Positions 2 to 59,600 of a DNA stretch of 64,000 bases are shown piece by piece. The notes beneath the pieces are model-generated. The model ran no database searches, had not been told where the DNA came from, and worked only from the letters and a program-made list of their open reading frames with translations. Within the stretch, counting starts at the first letter, position 1; each line of letters begins with the position of its first letter. The position numbers were made by a program, and so were the translations under genes. Source of the DNA: Anthoceros angustus (Eukaryota > Plantae > Anthocerotophyta); the NCBI GenBank assembly GCA_010909165.1, contig VJWM01000119.1, positions 620,001-684,000 of the forward strand, read 5' to 3'.

Positions 2-1252
2 GGGTGGCATTCCTCCACGTCTACCAAGCTGTTGATTGCTTTTGGGGTATTCGGCTTGGTGACTTTGGCGTTTCTGCTCTTCTACAAGTCTCCTGCTGGG
101 GCTCCCAGCTATGGTTCCTATCTAGGCACGAGTTCTGCCACATGGGGGGGCCGGGCGTGGGAGAAGAAGGTGCTGCACTCCGTCCGCCCTAAGAAGGACA
201 AGGAGGATGCCATGACCGTGCTGGTGACAGGTGCAGCAGGGTTTGTGGGGACGCATGTCTCGCTTGCGTTGAGGAAGAGAGGGGACGGTGTGGTGGGTCT
301 GGACAACTTCAACAACTACTACGATCCCTCGCTGAAGAGAGCGAGGCAGGAGCATCTGAGCAATTCTGGGGTGTTTGTGATCGAAGGAGATATTAATGAT
401 GCAGAGCTCCTGAAGAAGTTGTTTGACATGGTTCCGTTCACGCATGTGATGCATCTGGCAGCTCAGGCAGGTGTGAGGTATGCCATGGAGAACCCCAAGT
501 CGTACGTGCACAGCAACATTGCGGGGCTGGTCACCTTGTTTGAAGCCTGCAAGTCGGCAAACCCCCAGCCAGCTATCGTGTGGGCGTCGTCCAGTTCCGT
601 TTATGGTCTCAACCCCAAGGTCCCCTTCTCGGAGGCTGATCGCACGGACCAGCCAGCCAGTTTGTATGCTGCTACCAAGAAAGCTGGGGAGGAGATAGCG
701 CATACATACAACCACATCTACGGTCTCTCAATAACTGGACTGCGCTTCTTCACGGTGTATGGGCCTTGGGGTCGTCCTGATATGGCATACTTCTTTTTCA
801 CGAAGGATATTCTGCGTGGCACTCCCGTCTCGATCTACGAAGGGCAAGGGAAGAAGGACCTGGCACGGGACTTCACTTACATTGATGACATTGTCAAGGG
901 GTGTATTGCGTCTTTGCAGACTGCGGAGAAAAGTACAGGATCCGGAGGTAAGAAGAAAGGAGCTGCTCAGTTCCGTACATTCAACTTGGGCAACACCTCG
1001 CCTGTGACTGTGAAGGACCTGGTCAGCATTCTTGAGAAGCATCTGAAGTTGGAGGCAAAGAAGCAGTTTATCAAGATGCCCAGAAATGGTGATGTTCCAT
1101 TTACGCATGCAAACATCACCCTGGCCAGAGATCAACTCCACTACAGGCCGACCACAGACCTAAAGACCGGCCTGAAGAAGTTTGTGAACTGGTACAAAGA
1201 CTACTACGGGGAGAACGAACGTGGACCACGTGGTAGCAGGAAAACAATATGA
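2..1252 (+). CDS. GAE: UDP-glucuronate 4-epimerase (GAE family, Golgi type II membrane SDR); 5' end lies outside the window
   Basis: Frame is open from position 2. It has an N-terminal TM helix (LIAFGVFGLVTLAFLLFY), the GAAGFVG Rossmann motif, HLAAQAGVRY, the YAATKK catalytic motif and FFTVYGPWGRPDMAYF. Intronless, like plant GAEs. Confidence 0.95.
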   Translation, partial: GWHSSTSTKLLIAFGVFGLVTLAFLLFYKSPAGAPSYGSYLGTSSATWGGRAWEKKVLHSVRPKKDKEDAMTVLVTGAAGFVGTHVSLALRKRGDGVVGLDNFNNYYDPSLKRARQEHLSNSGVFVIEGDINDAELLKKLFDMVPFTHVMHLAAQAGVRYAMENPKSYVHSNIAGLVTLFEACKSANPQPAIVWASSSSVYGLNPKVPFSEADRTDQPASLYAATKKAGEEIAHTYNHIYGLSITGLRFFTVYGPWGRPDMAYFFFTKDILRGTPVSIYEGQGKKDLARDFTYIDDIVKGCIASLQTAEKSTGSGGKKKGAAQFRTFNLGNTSPVTVKDLVSILEKHLKLEAKKQFIKMPRNGDVPFTHANITLARDQLHYRPTTDLKTGLKKFVNWYKDYYGENERGPRGSRKTI

Positions 1253-13901: not shown

Positions 13902-16508
13902 TCACGGTCGACCTTTACAACTGCAAGAACCAGCTGCAAATCGATGCACACGATACCCATCCCTTACAACAATGTCCCTCTGTTCAACCCTTGACATGAT
14001 CTCCGTGGAACTGTGGCAGTCATTGCACATTCGTAGATTCTTCGTTACCACCAGAGGTGTGCCACTTGGAGTGTTCAAGAGACCAAACGCCAAAGCTAGC
14101 TTCTCAGCATGTCCGCAAAGCACATCTTCCTTTTCCTTCTCAGACAGTGGCTTCAACACCAACTTTGTGTGTGGTACATGGCCCCCTTCCTGCATCAGCC
14201 GTGCATTTACGTCCTCTACCTTGAGCGCAATATCATGTCTGTTTTCTCCTACCACAAATGTATGTACCTGCCTCTTCACCTCAATGCCCGCCACTGCAGG
14301 TTTCTTATTAGCTCCTGCTACCATTCTCTGTGTTTCAATCCTGTCTACATCGGTCCACCTACCTGCATCTGCATAAGCATTGGCCATGAGCACATATGCA
14401 GATGCACACTGAGGCTCCAGTCTAACCAGACTTTCAAAACACCATATCGCCCTCTCTACATCCCCGTGCCTTTTGCATGCATTCAGCAAAGACGTCAACC
14501 CCACAACATTGCTTTTGCTCTCACTTGATAACAGCATGTCCTCTGCCTCATCTAAATGGCCTGCACGCCCAAGAAGATCAATCATGCCATTGTAATGTTC
14601 AATACCAGGTTTGATGCCATGCTGTTCAACCATGGAATCAAAGAGGTTGCGGCCCTCATTCACCAGTCCCTCGTGACTGCATGCTGCTAAAAGGCAAGTA
14701 AAAGTAGTATCATCAGGCTCAACACCAGTGGCTACCATTTCCTCGAAATAGGCCAGTGCATTGTACCCTTCATCACAAGTACCACAACCAGCTATCAAGG
14801 CATTCCATGTCACCACATTTTTCGTGCTCAAGCTGTCAAAAACCGTGCGAGCAGCTTCCAGTTCGCCACATTTTGCATACATGTCCACCAGGCAGTTACC
14901 CAACACAATATTATCTAACAGTCCCCTTCTGACGATCTGCGAGTGCAGCTGTCTGCCCATCTGTAAGGCACCAGCGCTTGCACAGGCCTTCAAAAGGCAA
15001 GCAAAAGTAACCTCGTCAGCCACAATTAGGCAGTCCTGCTGCATTTGCCCATACAGAACAAGTGCCTCCTGGCCGAGCCCTTGCTTTGCGTACCCGGCAA
15101 TCAGGGCCGTCCATGTCACCACGTTTTTTGTGGCCAAACTGTCAAAAACCCGGCGTGCATCTTCCAGTTCGCCACACTTTGCATACATGTCCACCAGGGA
15201 AGTGCCCACAAGTACGTTATGTATCTGTCTTCTTCCCACAATCTCTGCATGGAGGTGCCTGCCTTTCTGTACAGCACCAGCGCTTGCACAGGCCTTCAGC
15301 AGGCAGGCGAAAGTTACATGGTTACAAACAATCAAGCCCTCCTGCTCCATTTGTTCGTACAGAACAAGAGCCTCATGGCCGAGCCCATGATCAGCATACC
15401 CACCAATCAGGGCTGTCCATGTCACCACATCCTTCGTGACCAAGCTGTCAAAAATCCTGCGTGCATGTTCCAGTTCGCCACATTTTGCATACATGTCCAC
15501 CAGGCAGTTGCCAACAAACAGGTTTATAGGGATGCCACTGTGCAACACATCAAGGTGCACTTTTCTGCCAGATTCCAGGTCCGCAGCACATGCACAAGCT
15601 TGAAGGGCTGCTACAAAGACGTGACAGTCCGCCTTCACACCTGAGCTACGCATCTCATGGTACAGTTGTATCGCCTCATCAGGTTTCCCATGTTTGGCAT
15701 GTGCGGAGATAATGGAGCACCACATGAAGGCATCTGGTTTGCCCACCCTGGTGAACACATCCATGGCCTCCTGGAGCCTACCTCCATGTGCATACATGCG
15801 CAAGATATGGTTTCCCAGGTACGTATTTGACTCGTACCCAAGTTTGACAGTGAGATCATGGACTCGTCGGCCCAAAACCAGATTCTCCTCAGCTGCACAC
15901 AATTTGAGCACAGCATAAATCAGAGACTGAGAAATAGGACAGTCTGTATGCGCCAGAGATTCCAGGGCTCCAACGGCCTCTGTGAGCTTCTCCTGCTGAC
16001 ATAACCTGCTCACGGTCACCGCCGTTACGCCGCCCATTTCCAATCCTGCAAGCCCGCCAGGCCCAGGCTTATCAGGAGAGATGGACTTGGAAGGAGAGGC
16101 ACCATGACCCATCCGCACATCCAAAGAAACGAGCTGCTCATCCACCCAATCTGGCTTGAACATGCTGTTTAACCAGAGGACCTCGTGGGACCCCTTGCGC
16201 CGGAAGTCAGGGGAACCTGAGCTCTTCTTACCTCGCCTGTTATCCCACCACATGGCAGGCTCCAGGAAAAAGTGCCGCCACAAGATCTCCTGCTCCTGGC
16301 CACCACCATTGCTGGAAAGGTCTTCCCCAGCCATCCATTTGCTCGGAAGTGCCGGGTTCCTTACACTGCTGCACCTGAGGGCTTGGTTGTTTGCCGGCGG
16401 TTGACTACATGAAGTGAGGTGAGCAGGAGCAGGAGCTCCTGGTAGATTCCCACTCAACCCACAAATTTGTTGGGTCCAAAACCGATCCGGTTGCCATACA
16501 GGGGCCAT
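13902..16508 (-). CDS. PPR editing factor #1: transit peptide - PDF motif - PLS PPR array (3 MYAKCG S motifs) - E1 - E2 - DYW:KP (GRP)
   Basis: Intronless ORF with 102-aa P-L-S triplets, KKPAVAGIEV, LCGHAEKLALAFG, KNLRMCNDCH and the C-terminus CSCKGRP. ATG at 16508 (MAPVWQ) aligns with the paralogs. Confidence 0.95.
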   Translation of the reverse strand: MAPVWQPDRFWTQQICGLSGNLPGAPAPAHLTSCSQPPANNQALRCSSVRNPALPSKWMAGEDLSSNGGGQEQEILWRHFFLEPAMWWDNRRGKKSSGSPDFRRKGSHEVLWLNSMFKPDWVDEQLVSLDVRMGHGASPSKSISPDKPGPGGLAGLEMGGVTAVTVSRLCQQEKLTEAVGALESLAHTDCPISQSLIYAVLKLCAAEENLVLGRRVHDLTVKLGYESNTYLGNHILRMYAHGGRLQEAMDVFTRVGKPDAFMWCSIISAHAKHGKPDEAIQLYHEMRSSGVKADCHVFVAALQACACAADLESGRKVHLDVLHSGIPINLFVGNCLVDMYAKCGELEHARRIFDSLVTKDVVTWTALIGGYADHGLGHEALVLYEQMEQEGLIVCNHVTFACLLKACASAGAVQKGRHLHAEIVGRRQIHNVLVGTSLVDMYAKCGELEDARRVFDSLATKNVVTWTALIAGYAKQGLGQEALVLYGQMQQDCLIVADEVTFACLLKACASAGALQMGRQLHSQIVRRGLLDNIVLGNCLVDMYAKCGELEAARTVFDSLSTKNVVTWNALIAGCGTCDEGYNALAYFEEMVATGVEPDDTTFTCLLAACSHEGLVNEGRNLFDSMVEQHGIKPGIEHYNGMIDLLGRAGHLDEAEDMLLSSESKSNVVGLTSLLNACKRHGDVERAIWCFESLVRLEPQCASAYVLMANAYADAGRWTDVDRIETQRMVAGANKKPAVAGIEVKRQVHTFVVGENRHDIALKVEDVNARLMQEGGHVPHTKLVLKPLSEKEKEDVLCGHAEKLALAFGLLNTPSGTPLVVTKNLRMCNDCHSSTEIMSRVEQRDIVVRDGYRVHRFAAGSCSCKGRP

Positions 16509-23215: not shown

Positions 23216-23898
23216 AATTTAGCTACTTGAATTTGTTCTAGCTACCACGCTTAGCTTTTGGGTTTCTCCTGATGCTGCTAAACCGGGTTATTTTGGAGCG
23301 GCTCCAGAAAAGACAAGTAGGGCTACAAGAAATGCAAGCCACAAAAATACAGTCAATGTGTAGCAAGACCTCTCCCATGGGACATGTACTATAGCTGGAA
23401 TGTGGTTATGGTTGGATTGTAGAGAAGGAGTAGCGAAAGCGTTTTGCCCTTCTTTTAAATCTGCTCCCCTTGCAATGCAAGACTTGCGCAAGCCTGAAGG
23501 GCTGCCAAAGGTTAAATAACATGGCCATCTGGCTTCAGACTCGTCCTGCGAATCCGATGATACTGATGTACGGAATTGTATGAGGATGTATGAGCAGGAA
23601 TTGTGGAAGGCCGGAGTCTGATCACTTGAACTACTAGGCCTTTGGCCCTCCACCTACTTGGCGCCTTTCTATCTTCTGACTATCAGCTGCGTGCTTGCTG
23701 GAATATATGATAATTTATAACTTTTAATGCTTTATAACGTCTTGTTCCACCAAAAACAAAATATCCAAAACGTCGAAGGTCAAGGCTACATATGCAGTCA
23801 CCCCCACGCCCATAGTGTCATACCATAGCTCGGCACATATATATCGGCATCCGGTTGAAATACGAATCAGTCCACTATCTTTCCTCCGATATATAAAC

Positions 23899-25125
23899 AT
23901 GGCGAAGCCAAGGACATCCCAGATGAATGCAAGTCTATGGAGCACGCTGCCTCGCGACATTGTGGCTTCGATCCAAGCTCGGCTGCCGCCGATGAGCCTG
24001 CTGCGGTCGCTCGCGGTGTGTAGAGATTGGAAAGCCACTGTATCATCGAAATGGTTTTGGCGGGAGCGGCTGGAATCGCTAGGAGGACAGCGTGAACGTA
24101 TGCTTTGCGTGGTGGCCTGGGGGAAATTCGACGTGGCGTGCTGCGTCTACGACCGTGCCTCGGACCGCTGGTACAAGCTCCCACTCCCGCAATGGCTGCA
24201 AGAGATCGGAGGTGGCAGTATCCCCGGTGTACTTTTGTATCTCCCCGCGGTGTCGGCGAGCAGCAACGTGCTGCTGTTTGTCTTGCAGGACCAGGAGCCG
24301 TGGGGCCTGCAAAGTCTCGTGCCGCACATAGGCAACCCGGTGGCGGGCTCTTGGATGAGCCTGCCGGAGCTCCCTGAGCCCCTGGAGGTCACCGATGTGT
24401 TGGGCGTGTACGAGGACGCCGGGACGCACTCCTTCAAGCTGGTGGCGATGACCAAGCTTCAGAAGGGCGAGGAAACGGATCATCAAGTACGAGTCTTCGA
24501 CTCCGCGCTCGGGATCTGGAGTATCATAGCCTCGCCCTTGCCCGGGACGGAGTTGTTGAACTTCTGGGCGGACGATGGCGCGTTTGTGGGCTCCGTGCTC
24601 TACTATGTTGCCCAACGAGGTAAGGGCAATCTGCTGGCCTTCGACCTGGAGCAGGAGAGCTGGAGCCGGTTGCAAGTGGCCAAGCCTCGCTACCTCCGCA
24701 TCTTCTACTGCAACCTTGTCAACCTGCGGGAGCGGCTGCTCTGCGTGGCTTTGTGTTTAAATGTGCGGGTGCGAGGTACATCTGTGCAGATCTGGGAGCT
24801 GGATTTCGTAAGCATGGCGTGGACCCCGGTGGACGCAATGCCCGCTGCCATGTATTTCTCTAACTTCCGCAAGGTATGCTTCCCTGGGGGCAGATTCGAA
24901 TTCCGGATCGACAACCGCATCAAGGTCGTGGCGGGGCAGGGTTCGGAAGTATATATCATGCACCAAAAACTGGACAGGCTCGTGGCTGTCAATTTGCTAC
25001 CGAAGCCTGCTGTTTGGAGGTGGCTTCCAGCCTGCCCCTACAAGCAGTTTGCGGGCAAGAGTCGTTGCCGCAAGAGCCTTTACCGCCTGGATCCTTGGCT
25101 GGGATATTCGCCAGACCAAGGTTAA
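23899..25125 (+). CDS. F-box protein with C-terminal kelch-like/beta-propeller region, intronless
   Basis: F-box LWSTLPRDIVASIQARLP..SLLRSLAVCRDWK, plus NPVAGSW..LP, VFDSALGIW and LAFDLEQESW repeats. ATG at 23899. Confidence 0.88.
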   Translation: MAKPRTSQMNASLWSTLPRDIVASIQARLPPMSLLRSLAVCRDWKATVSSKWFWRERLESLGGQRERMLCVVAWGKFDVACCVYDRASDRWYKLPLPQWLQEIGGGSIPGVLLYLPAVSASSNVLLFVLQDQEPWGLQSLVPHIGNPVAGSWMSLPELPEPLEVTDVLGVYEDAGTHSFKLVAMTKLQKGEETDHQVRVFDSALGIWSIIASPLPGTELLNFWADDGAFVGSVLYYVAQRGKGNLLAFDLEQESWSRLQVAKPRYLRIFYCNLVNLRERLLCVALCLNVRVRGTSVQIWELDFVSMAWTPVDAMPAAMYFSNFRKVCFPGGRFEFRIDNRIKVVAGQGSEVYIMHQKLDRLVAVNLLPKPAVWRWLPACPYKQFAGKSRCRKSLYRLDPWLGYSPDQG

Positions 25126-27276: not shown

Positions 27277-30200
27277 CTACTTCAGCAAAGCTCGACTCTC
27301 GGGATGCTTCTGATTCCCAACTACAAAACTATGCACCAGTCCGTCCATATCTGTCCACCAGCTCTGACCTGGTCGCTTCCAGGCACTGATTCCAATTCTC
27401 TTAGCCTGCGTCGCTTGTGCTTGCTCCCACATCTGGGCACCGGTGTATATGCTTGACATGAGCACATAGGCGGCCGCATCTTTCTTGTCCAGCTTCACTG
27501 CTTCGTCAAAAGCCCAGCGTCCCACCTCCACGCTGCCCCACTTTCGACACGCACCCAACAGAGTCTGCCAAATAGCAGCATCTGGAAGTACAGGCATTGA
27601 CTTTACCAAAGATAGTGCCTCATCCAGTCGGCCTGCCCGGCCCAGGAGATCAACCATGCATGTGTAGTGCTCCACCGTGGGGGTGATGCCGTAAAGTGTC
27701 AACATATCTTCAAAGTACTGTCTCCCCTTGCTTACCAACCCCCGATGACTGCATGTTGTCAGTACGCCTAGAAGCGTGATGCCATTTGGCTGTACCCCAT
27801 CCTCTCTCATTTTGAGAAGCAAGTTAAAAACCTCTTCACTATCTCCTTGGCTGCTGTATCCTGCGATCAGGGCATTCCAGGAGACCACGTTTCTCTCCGG
27901 CAAAGCCTCAAACACCTGCTGTGCTTCATCCATGCTCCCACACTTGGCGTACATGTTTATCAAACTCCGGGCTATGAACACATCACCTTCGAGCCCCTGT
28001 CCTTCAATCTGTGCATGTAACTGCCTTCCCAGATGCAAGGCTGCCACATTAGCACATGCCTGCAGGAGGCACGCAAATGTCACAGAATCCGGGACTGCGA
28101 CGTCATCTGCTTGCATAGCACCGTACAGACGAAGGGCTTCTTGGCCATTGCCCTGCCGGGAATATCCTGAGATCATGGCATTCCATGTCACCACACTCCT
28201 TGCACTAAGTCCATCAAACACGGTTTGAGCGTCTTTTAGGCTGCCACACTTCGCATACATGTTCACCAAGCTGTTGGCAACAACTACATGAGCTTGAAGC
28301 TCTCGCCCTCTGATTTGCTCATGAAGCTGTTTCCCCTTCTCCAGAGCTGGGCTGCCCTCACTTGCACACGCCTGTAGGAGGGACACGAAAGTCTCAGCAT
28401 TTGGTGCTGCCATGCCATGTTCTTGCATCACACTGTAGACACGAAGGGCCTCCTGTCCCATGCCCTGCTGGGCGTACGCAGCTATCATGGAATTCCATGT
28501 CACCACATTCTTTTCAGCAAGTTCATCAAACACTCTCTGAGCATCCTCTAAGCTGCCACACTTTGCATACATGCTCACCAAACTACTGCCTACGAAGACA
28601 TCAGCTTGATATCCCAGTTCTCTAATCTGCGAATGAAGCTGCTTCCCCTTCTCCAAAGCTGGGGGCCCCACATGTCCACAGGCTTGCAGTAGGCAGGCAA
28701 ATGTCACAGAATCTGGTGCTGCATTGCTATCCTCTTGCATAGAACTGAACAGATGAAGCGCTTCTTGGCCCTTGCCGTGCTGGGAATACAGAGATATCAT
28801 GGTATTCCATGTTACCACATCTTTGTTACCGAGTCCATTGAAGACTCTTTCAGTGTCATCCAAGCTACCACACTTTGCGTACATGTTTACCAAACAGTTG
28901 GCTATGAGCACATCAGCTTCATGTCCTGCTTCTCTAATTTGTGTATGAAGTAGCTTCCCCTTATCCAATGCCCGGCTACCCAGTATTGCACATGCTTGGA
29001 GGAGGAACACAAAAGTCACAGAGTTGGGCACAGCAATTCCTTCTTCTTGCATAGCGCTGTAGAGGACAAGGGCTTCCTTGCCCATTCCATGCTGGGAATA
29101 TCCTGCAATTAGAGCAGTCCATGTCACCACATCTTTTTGAACAAGTCCGTCAAACAGTCTCTGAGCATCCTCCAAGCTGCCACACTTTGCGTACATGTGT
29201 ACCAAACTGTTTGCTACAAATACATCAGCTTGATGTCCTCGTTCTCTAATTTGCGCATGAAGCTCCTTCCCCTTCTCCAAAGCTGGGCTGCCCACACTCG
29301 CACATGCTTGCAGGAGGCAAACAAATGTCACCGCATTGGGAACAGCAATGCCTTCTTCTTCCATCATGCTGTAGAGACGAAGGGCTTCCTGGTCCATGCC
29401 CCGTTGAGTATACCCTGCAATTAGGGCAGTCCATGTCACCACATCCTTTTGACCAAGTCCGTCAAACACTCTCTGAGCGTCCTCTAAGCTTCCACACTTT
29501 GCATACATGTCCACCAAGCTATTGCAGACAAACAAATGAGGCTGGACCCGACCAGCCAACACATCAGCGTGCACCTGCTTGCCAGTTTCCAAGTCTGATC
29601 CCCTTGCACAAGCCTGAAGGGCTGCCACAAATACATGCCCATCTGGCTTCACACTTGACCTGCGCATCTCATGGTACAGTTGAATGGCCTGCTTGTCTTT
29701 TCCATCCTTCACATGCGCAAATATTATGGAAGACCACATGAAGGCATCTGGTTCGTGAACCATGGTGAACACATCCATCGCGTCCTGCAATCTGCCATTC
29801 CAAGCATACATTCGGAGTATGTGATTGCAAAGAAACGTATCTGACTGATAACCCCTTTTCACTGACAAAGCATGGATGCGGCGACCCAGAACAAGCTCCT
29901 TCTTCACCACACAGCCCTTCAGGACAGTATAGAAAAGACTAATGTCAATAAAACAGTCCATCTGCACCAGAACTCCCAAAGCCTCAACAGCCTCAGCGAG
30001 AAAACCCTCACGACATAGCTTGCTCACGGATTCAGGAGTCACATCCCTGTTGTATCCTGCAGGCCTGCGAGGATCAGGATCGTCCACTAAGCCCCATTTG
30101 GATTTCGATGCAGAATGGCCCCCCTCCACATCAAGGGCAAGGGAAGCAAGCTCCCCACCCACCCAACCTGGCTTGCAGAAAATGTTAAGCAAGAGCACTT

Positions 30201-30447
30201 CCTGGGACTCTGGACATAAGAGCTCCTGGCAACCACCCTCGCTGGAAGATCCGTCTCCAGCCATACATCCTCTTGGACGGGGTGTCTTAGTGCAGGAGCA
30301 TGCACCTTGGTTGTTTCCCGGGCCTTGGTTCCTTACAGCCAGATGACCAAGAGCCCTGCCACTTGTAGCTGTAAACCGATGACGTTGTCGGGTCCACAAA
30401 ACCTGATCCAACAACGAGTCCTGTCTTGCAACACTCCAGACGGCCAT
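27277..30447 (-). CDS. PLS-class PPR protein with long-L motifs, E1-E2 and a WW-type PG box, truncated before the deaminase core (E+ type)
   Basis: 1056-aa intronless ORF with 104-aa triplets (36-aa P, 37-aa L, 31-aa S). Ends KRPGQSWWTDMDGLVHSFVVGNQKHPESRALLK*. No HxE/CxxC. Confidence 0.92.
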   Translation of the reverse strand: MAVWSVARQDSLLDQVLWTRQRHRFTATSGRALGHLAVRNQGPGNNQGACSCTKTPRPRGCMAGDGSSSEGGCQELLCPESQEVLLLNIFCKPGWVGGELASLALDVEGGHSASKSKWGLVDDPDPRRPAGYNRDVTPESVSKLCREGFLAEAVEALGVLVQMDCFIDISLFYTVLKGCVVKKELVLGRRIHALSVKRGYQSDTFLCNHILRMYAWNGRLQDAMDVFTMVHEPDAFMWSSIIFAHVKDGKDKQAIQLYHEMRRSSVKPDGHVFVAALQACARGSDLETGKQVHADVLAGRVQPHLFVCNSLVDMYAKCGSLEDAQRVFDGLGQKDVVTWTALIAGYTQRGMDQEALRLYSMMEEEGIAVPNAVTFVCLLQACASVGSPALEKGKELHAQIRERGHQADVFVANSLVHMYAKCGSLEDAQRLFDGLVQKDVVTWTALIAGYSQHGMGKEALVLYSAMQEEGIAVPNSVTFVFLLQACAILGSRALDKGKLLHTQIREAGHEADVLIANCLVNMYAKCGSLDDTERVFNGLGNKDVVTWNTMISLYSQHGKGQEALHLFSSMQEDSNAAPDSVTFACLLQACGHVGPPALEKGKQLHSQIRELGYQADVFVGSSLVSMYAKCGSLEDAQRVFDELAEKNVVTWNSMIAAYAQQGMGQEALRVYSVMQEHGMAAPNAETFVSLLQACASEGSPALEKGKQLHEQIRGRELQAHVVVANSLVNMYAKCGSLKDAQTVFDGLSARSVVTWNAMISGYSRQGNGQEALRLYGAMQADDVAVPDSVTFACLLQACANVAALHLGRQLHAQIEGQGLEGDVFIARSLINMYAKCGSMDEAQQVFEALPERNVVSWNALIAGYSSQGDSEEVFNLLLKMREDGVQPNGITLLGVLTTCSHRGLVSKGRQYFEDMLTLYGITPTVEHYTCMVDLLGRAGRLDEALSLVKSMPVLPDAAIWQTLLGACRKWGSVEVGRWAFDEAVKLDKKDAAAYVLMSSIYTGAQMWEQAQATQAKRIGISAWKRPGQSWWTDMDGLVHSFVVGNQKHPESRALLK

Positions 30448-30589
30448 GAGTTTCTGGATTTACACACTCCAGAGCTGCAGCTGATATTGCTGGAGCCGCT
30501 GGAGCACCTAAGTGTGCATAGCTCCTGGTCTTTTCAGTTATCCTGTCCTCTGTCTTCTGAGTTTTGAACTCGTTTGCCTTGAAGATGGC

Positions 30590-34198: not shown

Positions 34199-34630
34199 AT
34201 GGTATCATGTCATGGTTCCTGTTGACAAGCCGCAAAGTCACATGATGTATGTTTGTGAACATCAAACTAGTTAGCCTATACCCACTTTCATTTCATGTAG
34301 CTACGACCTTGAAGCTTATTAGCTGCATGCTTGTGCAATGGGCACCGACTTGAGCCACCTGCTTTAATGACGGACAAATGTATTCCTGAGGAGCCTAATA
34401 GGGAGGGGAGGGGCGGATCATGGTATCATGTCATGGTTCCTGTTGACAAGCCGCAAAGTCACACGATGTATGTTTGTGAACATCAAACTAGGTAGCCTAT
34501 ACCCACTTTCATTTCATGTAGCTACGACCTTGAAGCTTGTTAGCTCCATGCTTGTGCAATGGGCACCGACTTGAGCCACCTGCTTTAATGACGGACAAAT
34601 GTATTCCTGAGGAGCCTAATAGGGAGGAGG
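34199..34630. repeat. ~221-bp near-perfect tandem duplication abutting the purine tract
   Basis: atggtatcatgtcatggttcc...gagcctaataggga occurs at 34199 and at 34420. Confidence 0.85.
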
Positions 34631-35326
34631 GAGGAGGAGGGAGGAGGGGAGGGGAGGAGGGAGGGGAGGGAGGGAGGGAGGGAGGGAGGAGGGAGGGAGG
34701 GGAGGGAGGAGGGAGGGAGGGAGGAGGGGAGGGAGGGAGGGAGGAGGAGGGGAGGAGGGAGGGAGGAGGAGGAGGGAGGGAGGAGGGAGGGGAGGGGAGG
34801 AGGGGAGGGAGGAGGGAGGGAGGGAGGGAGGGGAGGGGAGGGAGGAGGGAGGGAGGGGAGGGAGGGGAGGGAGGGAGGAGGAGGAGGGGAGGAGGGGAGG
34901 GGAGGGGAGGGGAGGGGAGGGGAGGGGAGGGAGGGAGGAGGAGGGGAGGGGAGGGAGGGAGGGGAGGGAGGGAGGAGGAGGGAGGGGAGGGAGGGGAGGA
35001 GGAGGGAGGAGGGAGGGGAGGGAGGAGGGAGGGGAGGGAGGGGAGGGGAGGGGAGGAGGAGGGAGGGGAGGAGGGGAGGGAGGAGGAGGGGAGGGAGGGA
35101 GGGAGGAGGGAGGGGAGGGGAGGGAGGAGGGGAGGGAGGAGGGAGGAGGGGAGGAGGAGGGAGGGGAGGGGAGGAGGGGAGGGAGGGGAGGGAGGAGGGG
35201 AGGAGGGGAGGGGAGGGGAGGGAGGGGAGGAGGAGAGGGAGGGAGGGAGGGAGGGAGGGAGGGAGGGAGGAGGGGAGGGAGGGGAGGGAGGGGAGGGGAG
35301 GGGAGGAGGGGAGGGAGGGGAGGGGG
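34621..35326. repeat. ~700-bp pure G/A low-complexity tract (GGA/GGGA/GGGGA)
   Basis: No pyrimidines on the plus strand across the tract. Confidence 0.97.
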
Positions 35327-35454
35327 TTACCTAATAAGGACATGTAGACTTTTCCCTCTTGATCTACCGGCTCCTTCCGACAAATCCTCTTGGTAATTTC
35401 CGCCACAATACCTTTGTCAGACTGCATCCATCAGCCAGCGCAACGTCAGCATGA

Positions 35455-46554: not shown

Positions 46555-49500
46555 TCACGGTCGACCGTTACAACTGCAACAACCAGCTGTGAATCGATGC
46601 ACACGGTACCCATCTCTTACAACAATGTCTCTCTTCTCCACCCTTGACATGATCTCCGTGGAACTGTGGCAGTCACTGCACATCCGCAGATTCTTCGTTA
46701 CCACCAGAGACGTGCCACTCGGAGTGTTCAAGAGACCAAACGCTAGGGCCAGCTTCTCAGCATGCCCGCAAAGCTCATCTTCCTTTTCCTTCTCAGACAG
46801 TGGCTTCAACACCAACTTTGTGTGTGGTACGTGGCCCCCTTCCTGCTTCAGACGTGCAGTTGTGCTCTCTGACTCGAGAGCAATATCATGTCTGTTTTCT
46901 CCCACCACAAATGTGTGGACCTGCCTTTTCACCTCGATGCCCGCCACTGCAGGTTTCTTGTTAGCTCCTGCTGCCCTTCTCTGTGTTTCAATCCTGTCAA
47001 CCTCGGTCCACCTACCTGCATCTGCATAGGCATTAGCCATGAGCACATATGCGGATGCACCCTGAGGCTCCAGGCCAACCAGGCTTTCAAAACACCACGC
47101 CGCCCTCTCTATATCCCCGTGACTTTTGCAGGAATTCAGCAAGGACGTCAACCCCACAACATTGCCTTGGCTCTCAGATGATAATAGCATGTTCTCTGCC
47201 TCATCGAGATAGCCTGCACGCCCGAGAAGATCAGTCATGCAATTAAAATGCTCAGTACTAGGTTTGATACCATGCTGTTCTACCATGGACCCAAAGAGCT
47301 TGCGACCCTCATTTACTAGCCCCGCGTGACTGCATGCTACTAAAAGGCAAGTAAAAGTAGCACCATCAGGCTGCACACCGGAGACTAACATCTCCTCAAA
47401 ACAAGCTAGTGCTCCCTGACCTTCATCACACGTACCGCACCCAGATATCAAGGCATTCCATGTCACCACACTTTTTGTGGACAAGCTGTTAAAAACCCGG
47501 CGTGCCTCCTCAAGTTCGCCACATTTTGCATACATGTCTACCAGGCAAGTGCCCACCAGCATGTTATCTAGCTGTCCTCTTTCCACAATCTGTGAATGCA
47601 GCTGCTTCCCCTGTTGTAAGGCCCCAGAGCTTGCACAGGCCTTCAGAAGGCAAGCAAAAGTAACCTCGTCAGCCACAATCAGGCCCTCCTCTTCCAATTG
47701 TTCATACAGAACAAGTGCCTCTTGGCCAAGCCCCTGATTTGCATACCCAGCAATCAGGGCATTCCATGTCACCACATCCTTTGTGGCCAAGCTGTCAAAA
47801 ACCTGGCGTGCATCTTCCAGTTCACCACATTTTGCATACATGTCCACCAGGCTGTTGCCCACCAGTACGTTATCCAGCAGTCCTCTTTCCACAATCTGTG
47901 AGTGCAGCTGCCTGCCCTTCTGTAAGGCACCAGTGCTTGCACAGGCCTTCAGAAGGCAAACAAAAGTAACATGTCAGCCACAATCAGGCCCTCCTGCTCC
48001 ATTTGTCCATACAGAGCAAGTGCCTGTCGAAGACCTTGCTGCATACCCAGCAATCAGGGCTGTCCATGTCACCACATCCTTTGTGGCCAAGCTGTCAAAA
48101 ACCTGTGCATCTTCCAGTTCACCACATTTTGCATACATGTCCACCAGGCTGTTTCCCACCAGTACGTTATCTGGCTGTCCTCTTTCCACAATCTGTGAGT
48201 GCAGCTGCCTACCCTTCTGTAAGGCACCAGCGCTTTTCAGAAGGCAAACAAAAGCAACCTCGTCAGCCACAATCAGGCCCTCCTGCTCCATTTGTCCATA
48301 CAGAGCAAGTGCCTCCGCAAGACCTTGCTGTGCATACCCAGCAATCAGGGCTGTCCATGTCGCCACCTCCTTTGTGTGGCCAAGCTGTCAAAAACCCGGC
48401 GTGCCTCTTCTAGTTCGCCACATTTTGCATACATGTCCACCAGGCAGTGCCCACAAGCATATTATCCAGCTGTCCTCTTCCACAATCTGTGAGTGCAGCT
48501 GCCTGCCCTTCTGTAAGGCACCAGCGCTTGCACAGGCCTTCAGAAGGCAAGCAAAAGTAACCTCGTCAGCCACAATCAGGCCCTCCTGCTCCATTTGTCC
48601 ATACAGAGCAAGTGCCTGTCGAAGACCTTGCTGCATACCCAGCTATCAGGGCCGTCCATGTCACCACATCCTTTGTGGCCAAGCTGTCAAAAACCCTGTG
48701 TGCATCTTCCAGTTCACCACATTTTGCGTACATGTCCACCAGGCTGTTTCCCACCAGTACGTTATCTGGCTGTCCTCTTTCCACAATCTGTGAGTGCAGC
48801 TGCCTACCCTTCTGTAAGGCACCAGCGCTTGCACAAGCCTTCAGAAGGCAAACAAAAGCAACCTCGTCAGCCACAATCAGGCCCTCCTGCTCCATTTGTC
48901 CATACAGAGCAAGTGCCTCGTCGCCAAGACCTTGCTGTGCATACCCAGCAATCAGGGCTGTCCATGTCGCCACCTCCTTTGTGGCCAAGCTGTCGAAAAC
49001 CCGGCGTGCCTCTTCTAGTTCGCCACACTTTGCATACATGTCTACCAGAGAAGTGCTCACAAGCATATTATCTAGCTGTCCTCTTTCCACAATCTGAGAG
49101 TGCAGCTGCCTGCCCTTATGTAAGGCACCAGTGCTTATACAGGCCTTCAGAAGGCAAGCAAAAGTAACATGGTTACCTACAATCTGGCTCTCCTGCTCCA
49201 TTTGTGCATACAGAACAAACGCCTGTAGACCGAGCCCATGATTTACATACCCAGCTATCAGGGCTGTCCATGTCACCACATCCTTTGTGGCTAAGCTGTC
49301 AAAAACCATGCGTGCATCCTCCAGTTCTCCAAATTTTGCATACATGTCCACCAGGCTGTTGCCCACCATTAGGTTATCAAGCTGTCCTCTTTCCACAATC
49401 TGTGAGTGCATCCTCCTTCCCATCTGTAAGGCACCTGCACTTGCACACGCCTTAAGAAGACAAGCAACAATAACATGGTCAGCCACAATCAGGCCTTCCT

Positions 49501-50953
49501 GTTCCATTTGTCCATACAGAACCAGCGCCTCTTGGCTGAGCCCATGAGATGCATACCCAGATATCAGGGCCGTCCATGTGACCACATCCTTGTTGGCCAA
49601 GCTGTCAAAAACCCTGCGTGCCTCTTCCAGTTCGCCACATTTTGCATACATGTCCACCAAGGAGTTGGCTACCAGTGCGTTGCCCAACTGTCCTCTTTTC
49701 ACAATCTGTGCGTGCAGCTGCCTACCTTTCTGTACGGCTCCAGCGCTTACACAGGCCTTCAGAAGGCAAGCAAAAGTAACATGGTTACCCACAGCTACCC
49801 CCTCCTGCTCCATTTGCCCATACAGATCCAGCGCCTCTTGACCTAGCCCATGATTTGCATATCCAGCTATCACGGCTGTCCATGTCACCACATCCTTTTT
49901 GACCAAGCTGTCAAAAACCCTGCGTGCTTCTTCCAATTCGCCACATTTTGCATACATGTCCACCAAGCAGTTGCCAACAAACAAGTCAGGAGGAATGTCA
50001 CTGTGCAACACATCGCAGTGCACTTTTCTGCCAGATTCCAAGTCTGCAGCAAATGCACAAGCTTGAAGGGCTGCTACAAAGACATGAGCATTGGCCTTCA
50101 CACCTGAGCTCCGCATCTCATAGTACAGTTGTATTGCCTCTTTGGGTCTCTTAAGTTTGGCATGTGCGGAGATTATCGAGCACCACATGAAGGCATCCGG
50201 TTTATCCACCCTGGTGAACACCTTCATGGCCTCCTGAAGCCTACCTCCACATACATACATTCGTAAGATATGGTTCCCCAGGTATGTATCAGACTCGTAC
50301 CCAAGTTTGACAGTGAGATCATGAACTCGTCTTCCAACAACCAGATCCTTCTTAGCTGCACACATTTTCAGAACAGTGTACAAGAGAGACTGAGAAATAG
50401 GACAGTGAGTCTGCGCCAGAGATTCCAGGGCTCCCACGGCCTCAGTAAGTTTCCCCTGCTGACATAACGTGCTCACGGTAACAGGAGTTACTACGCCCTC
50501 CGACAGTGCACGCGTGCCAGGCCCTGGTTTATCCAGAGAGCTTGACTTGGACGGAGAGGCACCATGACCCATCTGCATATCCAAAGAAACGAGCTGCTCA
50601 TCCACCCAAGCTGGCTTGAACATACTGTTTAACCAGAGGACCTCTCCAGACCCCTTCCGCCAAAAGTCAGGCGAACGAGAGCTCTTCTCACCTCTCCTAT
50701 TATCCCACCACATGGCAGGGTCCAGAAAAAATTGTCGCCACAGGTGGTCCTGTTCCTGCTCTTGCTCCTGCTGCTGGCGTCCACTGTGGGTGAGAATGTC
50801 TTCACCGCTCATCACTCTCATGCAACTGAAGGCTTGGTTGTTTGCCAGCGATTGAGACCATGAAGTGAGGTGAGCCGGAGGTCCTCGTGATATCCCTGTA
50901 CACCCACCAATTTGTTCGGTCCACAACGGATTTGGTTGCCATACTGTGGCCAT
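46555..50953 (-). CDS. PPR editing factor #2: PDF motif - PLS array - E - DYW:KP (GRP); reading frame broken by indels in repeated triplets at ~47950-48630 (pseudogene or assembly error)
   Basis: The 5' ORF 48566-50953 (MATVWQ..., PDF motif, 5 MYAK(C/F)G motifs) and the 3' ORF 46555-47892 (KKPAVAGIEV, HAEKLA, CSDCH, CSCNGRP) are linked by frameshifted 306-bp units. Confidence 0.85.
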
Positions 50954-53114: not shown

Positions 53115-56100
53115 TCACGGTCGACCGTTACAGCTGCAACAGCCATCTGCGAAACGATGCACACGGTATCCATCCCTTACAACAATGTTTCTCTTTTCAA
53201 CCCTTGACATGATCTGCGTGGAACTGTGGCAGTCACTGCACATGCGTAGATTCTTCGTTACCACCAGAGGCGTGCCACTCGGAGTGTTCAAGAGACCAAA
53301 TGCAAGAGCTAGCTTCTCAGCATGCCCGCAAAGTGCATCTTCCTTTTCCTTCTCAGACAGTGGCTTCAGCACCAACTTTGTGTGTGGTACGTGGCCCCCT
53401 TCCTGCTTCAGACGTGCATTCGTGCTCTCTGCCTTCAGCGCAATCTCATCATCTCTGTTTTCTCCCACCACAAATGTATGTACCTGCCTTTTCACCTCAA
53501 TGCCTGCCACTCCAGGTTTCTTGTTAGCTCCTGCTGCCATTCTCTGTGTTTCAATCCTGTCAACCTCGGTCCACCTACCTGCATCTGCATAAGCATTGGC
53601 CATGAGCACATAAGAAGAAGCACCCTGAGGCTCCAGTCTAACCAGACTTTCAAAGCACCGTGCAGCCTTCTCTATGTCCCCATGATTTTTGCAGGCATTC
53701 AGCAAAGACGTCAACCCCACCACATTACTTTGGCTCCCACAGGATAGTAGCATGTTTTCTGCCTCATCTAAATGGCCCGCACGACCAAGAAGATCAATCA
53801 TGCAATTGTAATGCTCAACAGCAGGTTTGATCCCATGCTGTTTAACCATGGAATCAAAGTACTCACGACCCTCATTCACCAGTCCCTCATGACTGCATGC
53901 TCCTAAAAGGCAAGTAAACGTAGCTTCGTCAGGTTGGATACCAGCGGCTAACATCTCCTCAAAACATGCTAGTGCTTTGTGACCTTCATCACAAATACCA
54001 CACCCACTTATCAGCGCCGTCCATGTGACTACATCCTTTGTGGACAGGCTGTCAAAAACCCTGCGTGCATCTTCCAGTTCGCCACATTTTCCATACATGT
54101 CCACCAGGCAGTTGCCCACTAATATGTTGTCTAGCTGTCCTTTTTCCTCGATCAGTGAGTGCAGCTGTCTGCCCTTCTGTAATGCGCCAGCGCTTGCACA
54201 AGCCTTTAGAAGGCAAGCAAAAGTAACCTCGTCAGCCACAATCAGGGCGTCCTCCTCCATTTGTCCATACAGAGCAAGCGCCTCTTGACTGAGCCCTTGC
54301 TGTACATACCCAGACATCAAGGAATTCCATGTCACCACATTTTTTGTGGCCAAGTGGTCAAAAACCTGGCGGGCATCTTCCAGTTCGCCACACTTTGCAT
54401 ACATGTCCACGAGACAGTTGCCTACAAGTATGTTATCTAGGTGTCCTTTCTCCACAATCTGTGAGTGCAGCTGCCTGCCCATCTGTACGGCACCAGCGCT
54501 TGCACACGCCTTCAGAACGCAAGCAAAAGTAACCTCGTCAGCCACATTCACGCCCTCCTGCTCCATTTGCCCATAAAGAATAAGTGCCTCTTGGCCGAGA
54601 CCTTGCTGTGCATACCCACCAATCAGGGCCGTCCATGTTACCACATCCTTTGTGGCCAAGCTGTCAAAAACTCTACGTGCATCTTCCAGTTCGCCGCACT
54701 TTGCATACATGTCCACCAGGCAAGCACCGACAAGGACATTACCCAGCTGTCCTCTCTCCACAATCTGTGAGTGCAGCTGCCTGCCCTTCTGCAAAGCGCC
54801 AGTGCTTGCACAGGCCTTCAGAAGGCAAGCAAATGTAAAGTGGTTACCCACAATCAGGCCCTCCTGCTCCATTTGCCCATACAGAACCAGTGCGTCTTCG
54901 CCGAGACCGTGTTGTGCATACCCGGCAATCAGAGCCGTCCATGTGACCACATCCTTGGTGGGCAAGCTGTCAAAAACACTGCGTGCAACTTCCAGTTCAC
55001 CACACTTTGCATACATGTCCACCAGGCAAGTGCCCACCAAGATGTTATTCAGGAGTCCTCTTTCATTAATCTGTGAGTGCAACTGCTGGCCCTTGTTCAA
55101 GGCAGCAGCGCTTGCACAGGCCTTCAGAAGGCAAGCAAACGTAACTTCATCAGGCACAATCAGCCCCTCCTGCTCCATTTGGCCATACAGAACAAGTGCC
55201 TCTCGACCCAGTCCTTGATTTGCATACCCAGCGATAAGGGCCGTCCATGTCACGACATTTTTAGTGGCCAAGCTGTCAAAAACTCTGCGTGCCTCTTCCA
55301 GTTCCCCACACTTTGCATACATGTCCACCAGGCAAGACCCCACAAGTGCATTATCTAGCTGTCCTCTCTCCACAATCTGTGAGTGCAGCTGCTTGCCCTT
55401 CTGTAAGGCACCAGTGCTTGCGCAGGCCTTCAGAAGGAAAGCAAAAGTAACATGGTTTCCCACTATCAGGCCTTCCTGCTCCATTTGTCCATACAAAACA
55501 AGCGCCTCCTGGCCGAGTCCATGATTTGCATACCCAGCTAGCAGGGCCGTCCATGTCACCACATCCTTCGTGACCAAGCTATCAAAAACCCTGCGTGCAT
55601 CTTCCAGTTCACCGCATTTTGCATACATGTCCACCAGGCTGTTGCCAATATGCAAGTTCGGAGGAATGTCACTCTTCAACATATCAGAGTGCACTCTTTT
55701 TCCAGATGGCAAGTCTGCGGCAACTGCACAAGCTTGAAGGGCTGCTACAAAGACGTGAGCATCCGCCTTCACACCTGAGCTACGCATCTCATGGTACAAT
55801 CGTATGGCCTCGTTAGGTTTCCCATGCTTAGAATGCGCGGAGATAATCGAAAACCACATGAAAGCATCGGGTTTCCCCACCCTGGTGAACACATCCATGG
55901 CCTCCTGTAGCCTACCTGCGTTTGCATACATGCGCAAGATATGGTTTCCCAAGTATGTATTTGATTCGTACCCAAGTTTGACTGTAAGATCATGAACTCG
56001 ACGCCCCACAACCAGATCCTTGCTTGCTGCACACAGTTTTAGCACAGTATACAACAGAGACTGAGAAATAGAACATTCTGTCTGCGCCAAAGATTCCAAG

Positions 56101-56636
56101 GCTCCAACGGCCTCGGTGAGCTTCCCCTGCTGACATAACGTGCTCACGGCTACAGCCCCTGCGACGCCCATGTCCGATACTGCACCTACGTCAGGTATAT
56201 CTGAAGAGCTCGACTTGGAAGGAGAGGGAACATGACCCATCTGCATATCCAAAGATACGAGCTCCTCATCCACCCAAGCGGGCTTGAACATGCTGTTTAA
56301 CCAGAGGACATCGTCGGACCCCTTGCGCCGGAAGTCAGGCGAACGAGAGCTCCTCTTGCCTCGCCTGTTATCCCACCACATGGCAGGGTCCAGAAAAAAT
56401 TGTCGCCACAGAAGCTCCTGCTGCTGCTCCCTCCGATCAGCAACGTTGGAAATTCCTTCCCCAGCCGTCCATTTGCTGGGAAGTGCTGGGTTCCTTACAC
56501 TGCTGCACCTGGAGGCTTGTTTGCTTGCCACCGGCTGGCTCCCTACGGCGAGGTGAGCCAGAGCTCCTCCTTGAATCGTTGTACACCCACCAATTTTTTG
56601 GGCCGACAATGGTTCCGGTTGCCATACTGTGGCCAT
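53115..56636 (-). CDS. PPR editing factor #3: PDF motif - PLS array (6 MY(A/G)KCG S motifs) - E - DYW:KP (GRP)
   Basis: Intact intronless ORF with KKPGVAGIEV, LCGHAEKLALAFG, CSDCH and CSCNGRP. ATG at 56636 (MATVWQ). Confidence 0.95.
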   Translation of the reverse strand: MATVWQPEPLSAQKIGGCTTIQGGALAHLAVGSQPVASKQASRCSSVRNPALPSKWTAGEGISNVADRREQQQELLWRQFFLDPAMWWDNRRGKRSSRSPDFRRKGSDDVLWLNSMFKPAWVDEELVSLDMQMGHVPSPSKSSSSDIPDVGAVSDMGVAGAVAVSTLCQQGKLTEAVGALESLAQTECSISQSLLYTVLKLCAASKDLVVGRRVHDLTVKLGYESNTYLGNHILRMYANAGRLQEAMDVFTRVGKPDAFMWFSIISAHSKHGKPNEAIRLYHEMRSSGVKADAHVFVAALQACAVAADLPSGKRVHSDMLKSDIPPNLHIGNSLVDMYAKCGELEDARRVFDSLVTKDVVTWTALLAGYANHGLGQEALVLYGQMEQEGLIVGNHVTFAFLLKACASTGALQKGKQLHSQIVERGQLDNALVGSCLVDMYAKCGELEEARRVFDSLATKNVVTWTALIAGYANQGLGREALVLYGQMEQEGLIVPDEVTFACLLKACASAAALNKGQQLHSQINERGLLNNILVGTCLVDMYAKCGELEVARSVFDSLPTKDVVTWTALIAGYAQHGLGEDALVLYGQMEQEGLIVGNHFTFACLLKACASTGALQKGRQLHSQIVERGQLGNVLVGACLVDMYAKCGELEDARRVFDSLATKDVVTWTALIGGYAQQGLGQEALILYGQMEQEGVNVADEVTFACVLKACASAGAVQMGRQLHSQIVEKGHLDNILVGNCLVDMYAKCGELEDARQVFDHLATKNVVTWNSLMSGYVQQGLSQEALALYGQMEEDALIVADEVTFACLLKACASAGALQKGRQLHSLIEEKGQLDNILVGNCLVDMYGKCGELEDARRVFDSLSTKDVVTWTALISGCGICDEGHKALACFEEMLAAGIQPDEATFTCLLGACSHEGLVNEGREYFDSMVKQHGIKPAVEHYNCMIDLLGRAGHLDEAENMLLSCGSQSNVVGLTSLLNACKNHGDIEKAARCFESLVRLEPQGASSYVLMANAYADAGRWTEVDRIETQRMAAGANKKPGVAGIEVKRQVHTFVVGENRDDEIALKAESTNARLKQEGGHVPHTKLVLKPLSEKEKEDALCGHAEKLALAFGLLNTPSGTPLVVTKNLRMCSDCHSSTQIMSRVEKRNIVVRDGYRVHRFADGCCSCNGRP

Positions 56637-59600
56637 CCTACAGGCACTGGTCTTGGAAATGACACTGCACAACAAGCTGTGCAAGCCGCAAAAGGATGCC
56701 TACGTACTGTGCATGACGACACCAACTTGAGATCCCTTCAGATAAAATCCAGGAATATCTGAACATATGGAATGCACGGATCGCCCCATCAGCTTCTTCG
56801 ATTCCTTCGGGGAAATCTCAAGCGAAATGGTGTACAGTGTACATACACCGAACGGAGTAGATACGCGAACAACGCTCGAGATCTGCCTCTGACTACAATA
56901 TTATGTATGCATTGGCACTTCATGTCTCAACACAAGTTTACACCAAATCATCCCAACCATCCTCATCCCCTCGTGATCCTTGACCCGCCTTTCTCAGCGT
57001 GTTTGATCTATGTTTTGTATACTTATTTGCCATTCGTGAACCATCTGCACTGCGTCTCTGATGGTGGTATGGTCATGTATAGCACTTCGGAATCCTGCCT
57101 CCGCCTGCATAGCTAGTTGTGGGCAAGATGGGCATAGTAGGCCAACCGGATCGATTGTGGACCCAACAAATTGGTGGGTGTACAGAGATTCTACGAGTAG
57201 CCCCCCACACCTCAGGGAGTCAACCGCTGGTAAACAACCCAGCCTCCAGGTGCAGTAGTGTAAGGAATCGAGCACTTCCGAGAAAATGGATGCCCGGGGA
57301 AGGATATGGTGGTCGGCAGGACCAAGAGCGGGAACAAGAGCTCTTGTGGCGACAATTTTCTATGAAGCCTGCCATGCTGTGGGATAGTCGGCGAGGTAAG
57401 AAAAGCTCTTGTTCCCCTGACTTCCGGCGTAAGGGCTCTGGCGAGTTCCTCCGGTTAAACAACATGTGGAAGCCAGCTTGGGTGGATGAGCAGCTGGTTT
57501 CTTTGGATATGCAGATGGGTTGTAGTGTCTCTACTTTCAAGTCGATTTCCCCGAATAAGCCTGAGCCAGGCAGGCGTGCAGGATCGGAATTTGGCGTCCT
57601 AACGGCTTTAACTGTGAGCACGTTATGTCAGCAGGAGAAGCTCACTGAGGCCGTTGGTGCCCTGGAATCTCTGGCGCAGTCAGGCTCTCCTATTTCTGAG
57701 TCTCTTTTTTATACCGTGCTGAAGCTGTGTGCAGCTAAGAAGGATCTGGCTGTGGGCCGACGAGTTCATGATCTCACTGTCAAACTTGGGTAAGTCAAAT
57801 ACATACTTGGGGAACCATATTTTGCGCATGTATGCATCTGGAGGTAGGCTACAGGAGGCCATGGATGTGTTCACCAGGGTGGGAAACCAGATGTCTTCAT
57901 GTGGTTTTCCGTAATTTCTGCACATGCTAAACATGGGAAACCGATTGAGGCCATTCAACTGTACCATGAGATGCGTAGCTCAGGTGTGAAAGCGAATGCT
58001 CATATCTTTGGAGCAGCCCTTCAAGCTTGTGCATTTGCTGCGACTTGGAAGGAGAGGAACATGACCCATCTGCATATCCAAAGATACGAGCTCCTCATCC
58101 ACCCAAGCTGGCTTGAACATGCTGTTTAACCAGAGGACATCGTCGGACCCCTTACGCCGGAAGTCAGGCGAACGAGCTCTCTTGCCTCGCCTGTTATCCC
58201 ACCACATGGCAGGGTCCAGAAAAATTGTCGCCACAGAAGCTCCTGCTGCTCCTCCGATCAGCGGAAATTCCTTCCCCAGCCGTCCATTTGCTGAAGTGCT
58301 GGGTTACACTGCTGCACCTGGAGGCTTGTTTGCTTGCCACCGGCTGGCTCCTACGGCGAGGTGAGCCAGAGCTCCTCATGAATCGTTGTACACCCACCAA
58401 TTTTTGGGCCGACAATGGTCCGGTTGCCATACTGTGGCCATCCTACAGGCACTGGTCTTGGAAATGACACTGCACAACAAGCTGTGCAAGCCGCAGGATG
58501 CCTACGTACTGTGCATGACGACACCAACTTGAGATCCCTTCAGATAAAATCCAGGAATATCTGAACATATGGAATGCACGGATCGCCCCATCAGCTTCTT
58601 CGATTCCTTCGGGAAATCTCAAGCGAAATGGTGTACAGTGTACATACACCGAACAGGTAGATACGCGAACAACGCTCGAGATCTGCCTCTGACTACAATA
58701 TTATGTATGCATTGGCACTTCATGTCTCAACACAAGTTTACACCAAATCATCCCAACCATCCTCATCCCTCGTGATCCTTGACCCGCCTTTCTCAGCGTG
58801 TTTGATCTATGTTTTGTATACTTATTTGCCATTCGTGAACCATCTGCACTGCGTCTCTGATGGTGGTATGGTCATGTATAGCACTTCGAATCCTGCCTCC
58901 GCCTGCATAGCTAGTTGTGGGCAAGATGGGCATAGTAGGCCAACCGGATCGATTGTGGACCCAACAAATTGGTGGGTGTACAGAGATTCTACAATGTACC
59001 TCAGGAGTCAACCGCTGGTAAACAACCCAGCCTCAGGTGCAGCAGTGTAAGGAATCGAGCACTTCCGAGAAAATGGATGGGGAAGGATATGGTGGTCAGC
59101 AGGACCAAGAGCAGGAACAAGAGCTCTTGTGGCGACAATTTTCTATGAAGCCTGCCATGCTGTGGGATAGTCGGCGAGGTAAGAAAGCTCTTGTTCCCTG
59201 ACTTCCGGCGTAAGGGTCTCGGCGAGGTCCTGGTTAAACAACATGTAAGCCAGCTTGGGTGGATGAGCAGCTGGTTTCTTTGGATATGCAGATGGGTCAT
59301 GGTGCTCTACTTTCAAGTCGATTTCCCGATAAGCCTGAGCCAGGCAGGCGTGCAGGATCGGAATGGCGTCCTAACGGCTAACTGTGAGCACGTTATGTCA
59401 GCAGGGAAGCTCACTGAGGCCGTTGGTGCCCTGGAATCTCTGGCAGACAGACTCTCCTATTTCTGAGTCTCTTTTTTATACCGTGCTGAAGCTGTGTGCA
59501 GCTAAGAAGGATCTGGCTGTGGGCCGACGAGTTCATGATCTCACTGTCAAACTTGGATTTGAATCAAATACATACTTGGGGAACCATATTTTGCGCATGT

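Follow-up and report, generated by a model that had tools for sequence, protein, structure and literature searches.

An OSB-type PDF motif precedes the PPR array in DYW:KP (GRP) genes and in other PLS editing factors of seed-free plants

The PDF motif of OSB proteins was found in frame, N-terminal to the PPR array, in DYW:KP (GRP) genes of the window (the whole 64,000-nucleotide stretch of DNA that was analysed). The fusion is real and makes a variant type of PLS editing factor; it is broader than first claimed and it is not specific to U-to-C enzymes. We regard this architecture and its OSB origin as close to certain, and the PDF-PPR fusion has probably been undescribed so far. Our preferred explanation, to which we give a probability of roughly 0.45, is that the fused PDF acts as an optional, non-specific single-strand-binding tether that would bring the editor to nucleoids and nascent RNA.

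The window had a GC content of 49% and reads as plant nuclear DNA. PLS-class PPR genes were clustered in it, beside a nucleotide-sugar epimerase gene and an F-box gene (Table 1). A PLS PPR array and E1/E2 motifs were present in the window proteins, as revealed by Pfam PPR and E_motif and by P-L-S periodicity. Five of the PPR genes were closed by a deaminase domain that carried KPAxA, HAEK and CxDCH and ended in GRP, and these GRP proteins possessed the KP box, the HxE and CxxC zinc ligands and the GRP end; GRP is a hornwort subgroup of DYW:KP (PMC9478123). The PDF was carried by all four GRP genes having their 5' ends inside the window (g1 to g4). The 5' end of the fifth lies beyond it.

Table 1. 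Positions of the genes, domains and other features in the window.
Feature	Position	Strand	Description
g1	13902..16508	-	868 aa, intact ORF: leader-PDF-linker-PLS PPR-E1/E2-DYW:KP(GRP)
g1 leader, aa 1-73	16290..16508	-	transit-peptide-like; few acidic residues, dN/dS ~1
g1 PDF domain, aa 74-129	16122..16289	-	helix / small beta-sheet / helix (predicted)
g1 linker, ~35 aa	16017..16121	-	disordered; pLDDT < 60 across much of it
g1 PLS-class PPR array	14601..16016	-	N-terminal repeats degenerate
g1 E1/E2 motifs	14307..14600	-	Pfam E_motif
g1 DYW:KP deaminase domain	13902..14306	-	KPAxA box, HAEK, CxDCH, GRP end
g2	46555..50953	-	g1-like architecture; frameshifted by several small indels around 47900-48600, inside a noisy internal repeat
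g2 PDF domain	50582..50749	-	motif at 50591-50746
g3	53115..56636	-	1173 aa, intact ORF; g1-like architecture, PPR array longer
g3 PDF domain	56250..56417	-	motif at 56259-56411
g4	57128..61798	+	divergent to g3; from 59375 on, open frame for the PPR-DYW:KP(GRP) body
g4 PDF domain, first copy	57338..57505	+	degenerate, WWDNR -> LWDSR; 40 bits; motif at 57344-57496
Extra (fifth) PDF copy	58088..58225	-	45 bits; in duplicated fragment of g3 5' end
Fifth DYW:KP (GRP) gene	63477..64000	-	C-terminal part
gX	27277..30447	-	PLS-E+ gene, WW-type PG box, stop ahead of deaminase core; no full DYW
gX PDF remnant	30139..30228	-	~26 core residues (WWDNR...PDF) missing in frame
Shared upstream element	~16572-16590, 56700-56715, ~51015-51030, ~30510-30525	-	~60 nt 5' of the ATG
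Nucleotide-sugar epimerase (GAE-like) gene	2..1252	+	ordinary-looking
F-box/beta-propeller gene	23815..25125	+	ordinary-looking
Long repeat	34500..35430		purine-rich, low-complexity, ordinary-looking

The PDF peptide that the earlier note had read in g1 was confirmed in frame at 16131-16283 on the reverse strand (aa 76-126), in an ORF without stop or frameshift. The leader and PDF of g1 were covered gap-free by contigs of sequencing runs that are guessed to be RNA. One run contig was identical to the window over 16230-16690, relatives spanned 16082-16494 and 16119-16469, and paralogous run contigs were stacked in number on the PDF motif. These data consist of contigs only and the RNA status of the runs is a guess; they show co-linearity and a large gene family, not an expression level. 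Upstream of the ATG, the paralogs had a short element in common (ATG, two or three codons, YAG|G). It could represent either a conserved splice acceptor or a very small upstream ORF, so that an upstream exon may exist and the true start of g1 may be further upstream than the leader given here.

A search of 1.84 billion cluster representatives with a profile made from the four motifs of the window found 492 proteins; many were composed of an OB fold (Pfam SSB) plus PDF, and a later search gave one named OSB2-like. An HMM was built from OSB PDF motifs, a check proposed in the earlier note, using 122 motifs from 66 OB-fold proteins with PPR and window sequences excluded. Run on the six-frame window, this OSB-only HMM gave 59-60 bits for g1-g3 and 40 bits for g4, and the claimed copies in g2 and g3 and the degenerate one in g4 were all located. 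The isolated g1 motif scored 72 bits, compared with 10.9 for the best of 2000 shuffles, and a chance match was rejected. Both this HMM and column conservation recovered a motif of about 50 aa, W..WWDNR..K...PDF.H/RK...LW....P.W. Eleven residues were fixed in 95% or more of the OSB copies (W, W, D, R, K, F, K, L, W, P and the N-terminal W), and each of them was 90-100% conserved in the fused copies.

The predicted fold agreed with this assignment. A 61-residue segment was modelled by AlphaFold with a pLDDT of 92.6 as a compact helix / beta-sheet / helix, giving a domain of about 55 residues; with the PPRs attached, the PDF stayed confident and was followed by a disordered linker. A shape search, with predicted models on both sides, matched the domain to an SSB/OSB cluster (TM 0.92, rmsd 0.9), to three streptophyte PPR clusters (TM 0.82-0.92) and to two tailed-phage clusters of the ESM Atlas (TM 0.69-0.75). 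An ESM feature search gave phage gp49-like clusters at 0.81 or below, which is a lead only. Taken with the HMM scores, the conserved residues and the introns shared by fusion genes of other species, the predicted fold identifies the segment as an OSB PDF motif, as had been proposed.

Other searches returned little. Pfam held no model for the PDF motif. Sequence searches of the PDB returned nothing beyond weak matches to CP29 (E 0.6-1.4), regarded as chance. Neither Foldseek nor VIA found a structural match in the PDB (best Z 3.1) or BFVD, and no solved structure was found. Querying the word index with the motifs of g1 and Selaginella gave no hits, which we attribute to the sensitivity of these searches, the profile having found 492 proteins. 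No SSB match was observed in the window proteins, and OB fold and PPR occurred together in none of the retrieved proteins. The window proteins are therefore not OSB proteins, as they have no OB fold. PDF arrays of up to nine copies without an OB fold were seen in P0014 (Cladocopium), P0093 (Sanguina), P0003 and P0007, and some such arrays belong to dinoflagellate and green-algal proteins; the PDF domain extends beyond OSBs and land plants. In P0067 (1526 aa), three PDF motifs stand before a kinesin motor domain, which may reflect a fused gene model.

A phase-0 intron right after WWDxRxxK was present in fusion genes of Selaginella, Sphagnum and Diphasiastrum (in the last, in each of the three PDF copies), and those of Sphagnum and Diphasiastrum also had a phase-1 intron a few codons 5' of the domain. 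Both introns lay at matching positions in three OSB genes; a Sinapis multi-PDF OSB gene had no introns inside its PDFs. The shared positions strongly support DNA-level capture, in which the PDF exons of an OSB gene were taken into PPR genes. In the gene L006 each PDF copy formed its own phase 1-1 exon pair, a unit that accounts for tandem PDF copies. The capture was probably early in land plants, because hornwort-type, liverwort, moss, lycophyte and fern genes all include fusions; a later spread of the fused domain with the editing-factor family is likewise strongly supported. The PDF tree, poorly resolved at 60 columns, had 4 changes, and a single fusion origin was compatible with it, although only "not rejected" (AU p = 0.36). 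The window copies had no introns at these positions and look like intron-less retrocopies, in line with a published account in which retroposition drove the expansion of PPR genes in hornworts (PMC13386178). An assembly artefact as the source of the fusion was rejected, given the intron-containing genes of other species and the single contigs of sequencing runs.

PDF-PPR fusions were found in ferns (Ceratopteris, Adiantum and Pteridium), lycophytes (Selaginella and Diphasiastrum), moss (several Sphagnum species) and a liverwort (Calypogeia). A PDF was called in 142 of the 145 PPR proteins that a query with the motif retrieved, always before the PPR array and sometimes in 2-3 copies; two or three tandem domains were seen in P0169-P0182 (Diphasiastrum), P0002 and P0030. 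By C-terminal type, 49 of the 145 were HSE-type canonical DYW proteins (36 ending in DYW), 1 was HAE/GRP and the remainder were E-class or fragments, a ratio that is no census, the set being biased by a Sphagnum query and poor hornwort coverage. PDF-bearing proteins fell on KP, PG and E-class branches in a tree of the C-terminal region.

The fusion had originally been described as one to candidate U-to-C enzymes. The in-frame join to a domain with KPAxA, HAEK, CxDCH and GRP held; its reading as a feature of U-to-C enzymes did not. Mosses and liverworts stand outside the U-to-C clades (PMC9478123), so that even a biased set refutes specificity to U-to-C editing; canonical DYW and E-class proteins headed by the PDF came from Sphagnum, Calypogeia, Selaginella, Diphasiastrum and ferns. 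Further, synthetic GRP proteins made of a PLS array and C-terminal domains edited U-to-C at 22-26% in E. coli (PMC9478123), indicating that the PDF is not needed for catalysis. A PDF specific to U-to-C enzymes, or one enabling action on ssDNA (organelle DNA editing), would agree with its presence in every 5'-complete GRP gene of the window and with the loss of its core in the sole non-KP PPR gene there. It is nevertheless highly improbable given the 49 HSE-type fusions against a single KP one, mosses and a liverwort included, and the spread of PDF bearers over the C-terminal tree; nothing in the present data supports DNA deamination.

Amino-acid identity among g1-g3 was 85% in the motif, 54% in the leader and 60% in the linker, in agreement with the earlier observation that the leader diverges while the motif is nearly identical. 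The dN/dS values, pooled over pairs of few sequences, were 0.18 for the PDF, 1.07 for the leader, 0.48 for the linker and 0.25 for the first PPRs. Judged by these ratios, the PDF domain is under purifying selection and constrained at least as strongly as the PPR array. The leader evolved like a targeting peptide, and its composition also fits, with the start uncertain owing to the possible upstream splice acceptor. A constrained PDF behind a relaxed leader suggests that the mature protein may keep its PDF after import.

The paralog gX retained a leader and linker homologous to those of the window GRP genes, while its PDF core was gone; the module would thus be older than the KP/WW split or have moved between the two types. 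The in-frame loss also indicates that the PDF module can be lost, and gX offers a natural deletion control for the core. Such a loss would be expected if the PDF had arrived with OSB exons, or with a targeting sequence borrowed by a PPR gene, and were now functionless or merely stabilising; degenerate copies in g4 and P0045, and a PDF unnecessary in heterologous assays (PMC9478123), agree with this. However, the low dN/dS of the PDF already weakens a passive role, and the core was near-invariant in moss, liverwort, lycophyte, fern and hornwort-type copies. In OSBs the PDF is placed behind the OB fold and well away from the transit peptide, whose borrowing would therefore not bring it. We consider a passive passenger quite improbable.

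Under the preferred tether explanation, the PDF would remain on the mature editor after organelle import and bind single-stranded nucleic acid weakly, without sequence preference. Such binding would keep the editor close to nucleoids and to transcripts still being made, raising its local concentration or adding avidity. Site choice would be left to the PPR array and the direction of editing to the DYW domain, the PDF being an optional helper that does not determine U-to-C chemistry. In AtOSB1 the PDF motif suffices on its own for ssDNA binding (PMC6963530), and nucleoid association is common among PPR proteins (PMC10226603). Fused domains from outside the window were more basic than OSB ones (mean net charge +2.2 versus -0.2), but the four window copies averaged only +0.25. 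RNA binding is not given, as OSB1/2 favour ssDNA over dsDNA or RNA (PMC4166229). Also weighing against a tether, the PDF is dispensable for editing in E. coli (PMC9478123) and its core is missing from gX; PPR56, whether a PDF carrier or not, has been used in E. coli without its N-terminus (PMC10482289), and the single origin of the fusion has the tentative standing given above.

A PDF that contacts RNA could alternatively work as a built-in chaperone, opening structured target RNA by the PPR site as a cis counterpart of the MORF/ORRM helpers. Fusions were found in seed-free lineages only and MORFs occur in seed plants alone (PMC13386178); editing by PPR56 is blocked by RNA structure (PMC10482289); and in the predicted arrangement the PDF would sit on a flexible linker at the PPR end facing the 5' side of the target. 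This role is rather unlikely, however, given the OSB preference for ssDNA over RNA (PMC4166229) and the action of MORFs on the PPR protein instead of the RNA (PMC10226603). No PDF-PPR fusion of a seed plant was seen in database searches, which were too insensitive to show absence.

A protein-protein module, docking the editor on OSB, nucleoid or editosome partners or pairing editors (for instance E-class with DYW donors), would suit the many E-class or truncated members among the fused proteins, for which a deaminase would have to come from a partner. The conserved tryptophans are many, tandem copies (2-3) occur in Diphasiastrum and multi-copy algal proteins have no OB fold, all of which would suit such a module, and OSB2 is a tetramer (PMC6963530). 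This proposal is doubtful, because ssDNA binding is the only measured activity of the motif (PMC6963530) and the PDF was as frequent in complete DYW proteins as in E-class ones.

Known OSBs (OSB1-4 / pTAC9) consist of a transit peptide, an OB fold and 1-5 C-terminal PDF motifs, and act in DNA recombination control. The fused proteins share with them the PDF signature, the predicted fold and, in fusion genes of other species, the phase-1 and phase-0 intron positions, but they have no OB fold and place the PDF N-terminally, joined to a PPR array and deaminase. They resemble the hornwort DYW:KP (GRP) PLS editing factors, candidate U-to-C enzymes, in PLS array, E1/E2, KPAxA, HAE, CxxCH and GRP end; these are described as transit peptide, PLS, E and DYW, and an N-terminal PDF was unmentioned in the literature examined. 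RRM-PPR (PPR4), PPR-SMR, PPR-LAGLIDADG and RRM/MORF-PPR fusions (PMC13386178) likewise add a nucleic-acid-binding module to a PPR scaffold. In contrast to those, the PDF derives from a protein of DNA maintenance, lacks a Pfam model and is found on large PLS editing-factor families.

Catalogues of accessory-domain PPR fusions are without a PDF module. PPR goes unmentioned in a 2026 survey of how OSBs evolved (PMC13393729), a survey of editing-factor domain fusions from the same year mentions neither OSB nor PDF (PMC13386178), and the Physcomitrium PPR catalogue lists no PDF-like domain (PMC9459714). The missing Pfam model and solved fold are the likely reason why fusion surveys missed the PDF. 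Our literature search, which covered the subscription literature in part only, found no paper describing the fusion; the novelty suspected in the earlier note is thus probable, not proven.

Editors of seed-free plants have been treated as self-sufficient PPR+DYW proteins, and constructs for E. coli and human cells omit everything before the first PPR. An extra domain under selection on many editors would alter this picture. The fusion ties organelle DNA-maintenance proteins to RNA maturation and makes editing-nucleoid coupling, an open question in a 2023 review (PMC10226603), directly testable. We tentatively suggest that seed-free plants may equip a large share of their RNA editors, of both directions, with a captured ssDNA-binding domain coupling editing to nucleoids or transcription bubbles; it would amount to an intrinsic, so far overlooked equivalent of the editosome helpers of seed plants, trimmed from standard heterologous constructs. 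GRP-type U-to-C designer editors, whose efficiency is low, might also become more efficient with a PDF.

What the window contributes is a pair of intact GRP genes together with a paralog from which the PDF core was lost naturally. The broken g2 and g4 were left unjoined and searched piecewise. The 5' part of g4 was present twice, owing to a direct duplication at 56211-59812. The 5' ends of g3 and g4 sit in this 1.8-kb direct duplication, whose copies differed by 23 substitutions and 36 gap openings; those of a second one at 47600-49300 likewise differed mainly by 1-2 bp indels. Differences made up mostly of indels suggest that both regions probably reflect long-read assembly noise and not true pseudogenes. 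The fifth PDF copy, on the reverse strand, is probably such noise as well, and a sixth, broken by indels, was found near 59130 within the g4 duplication.
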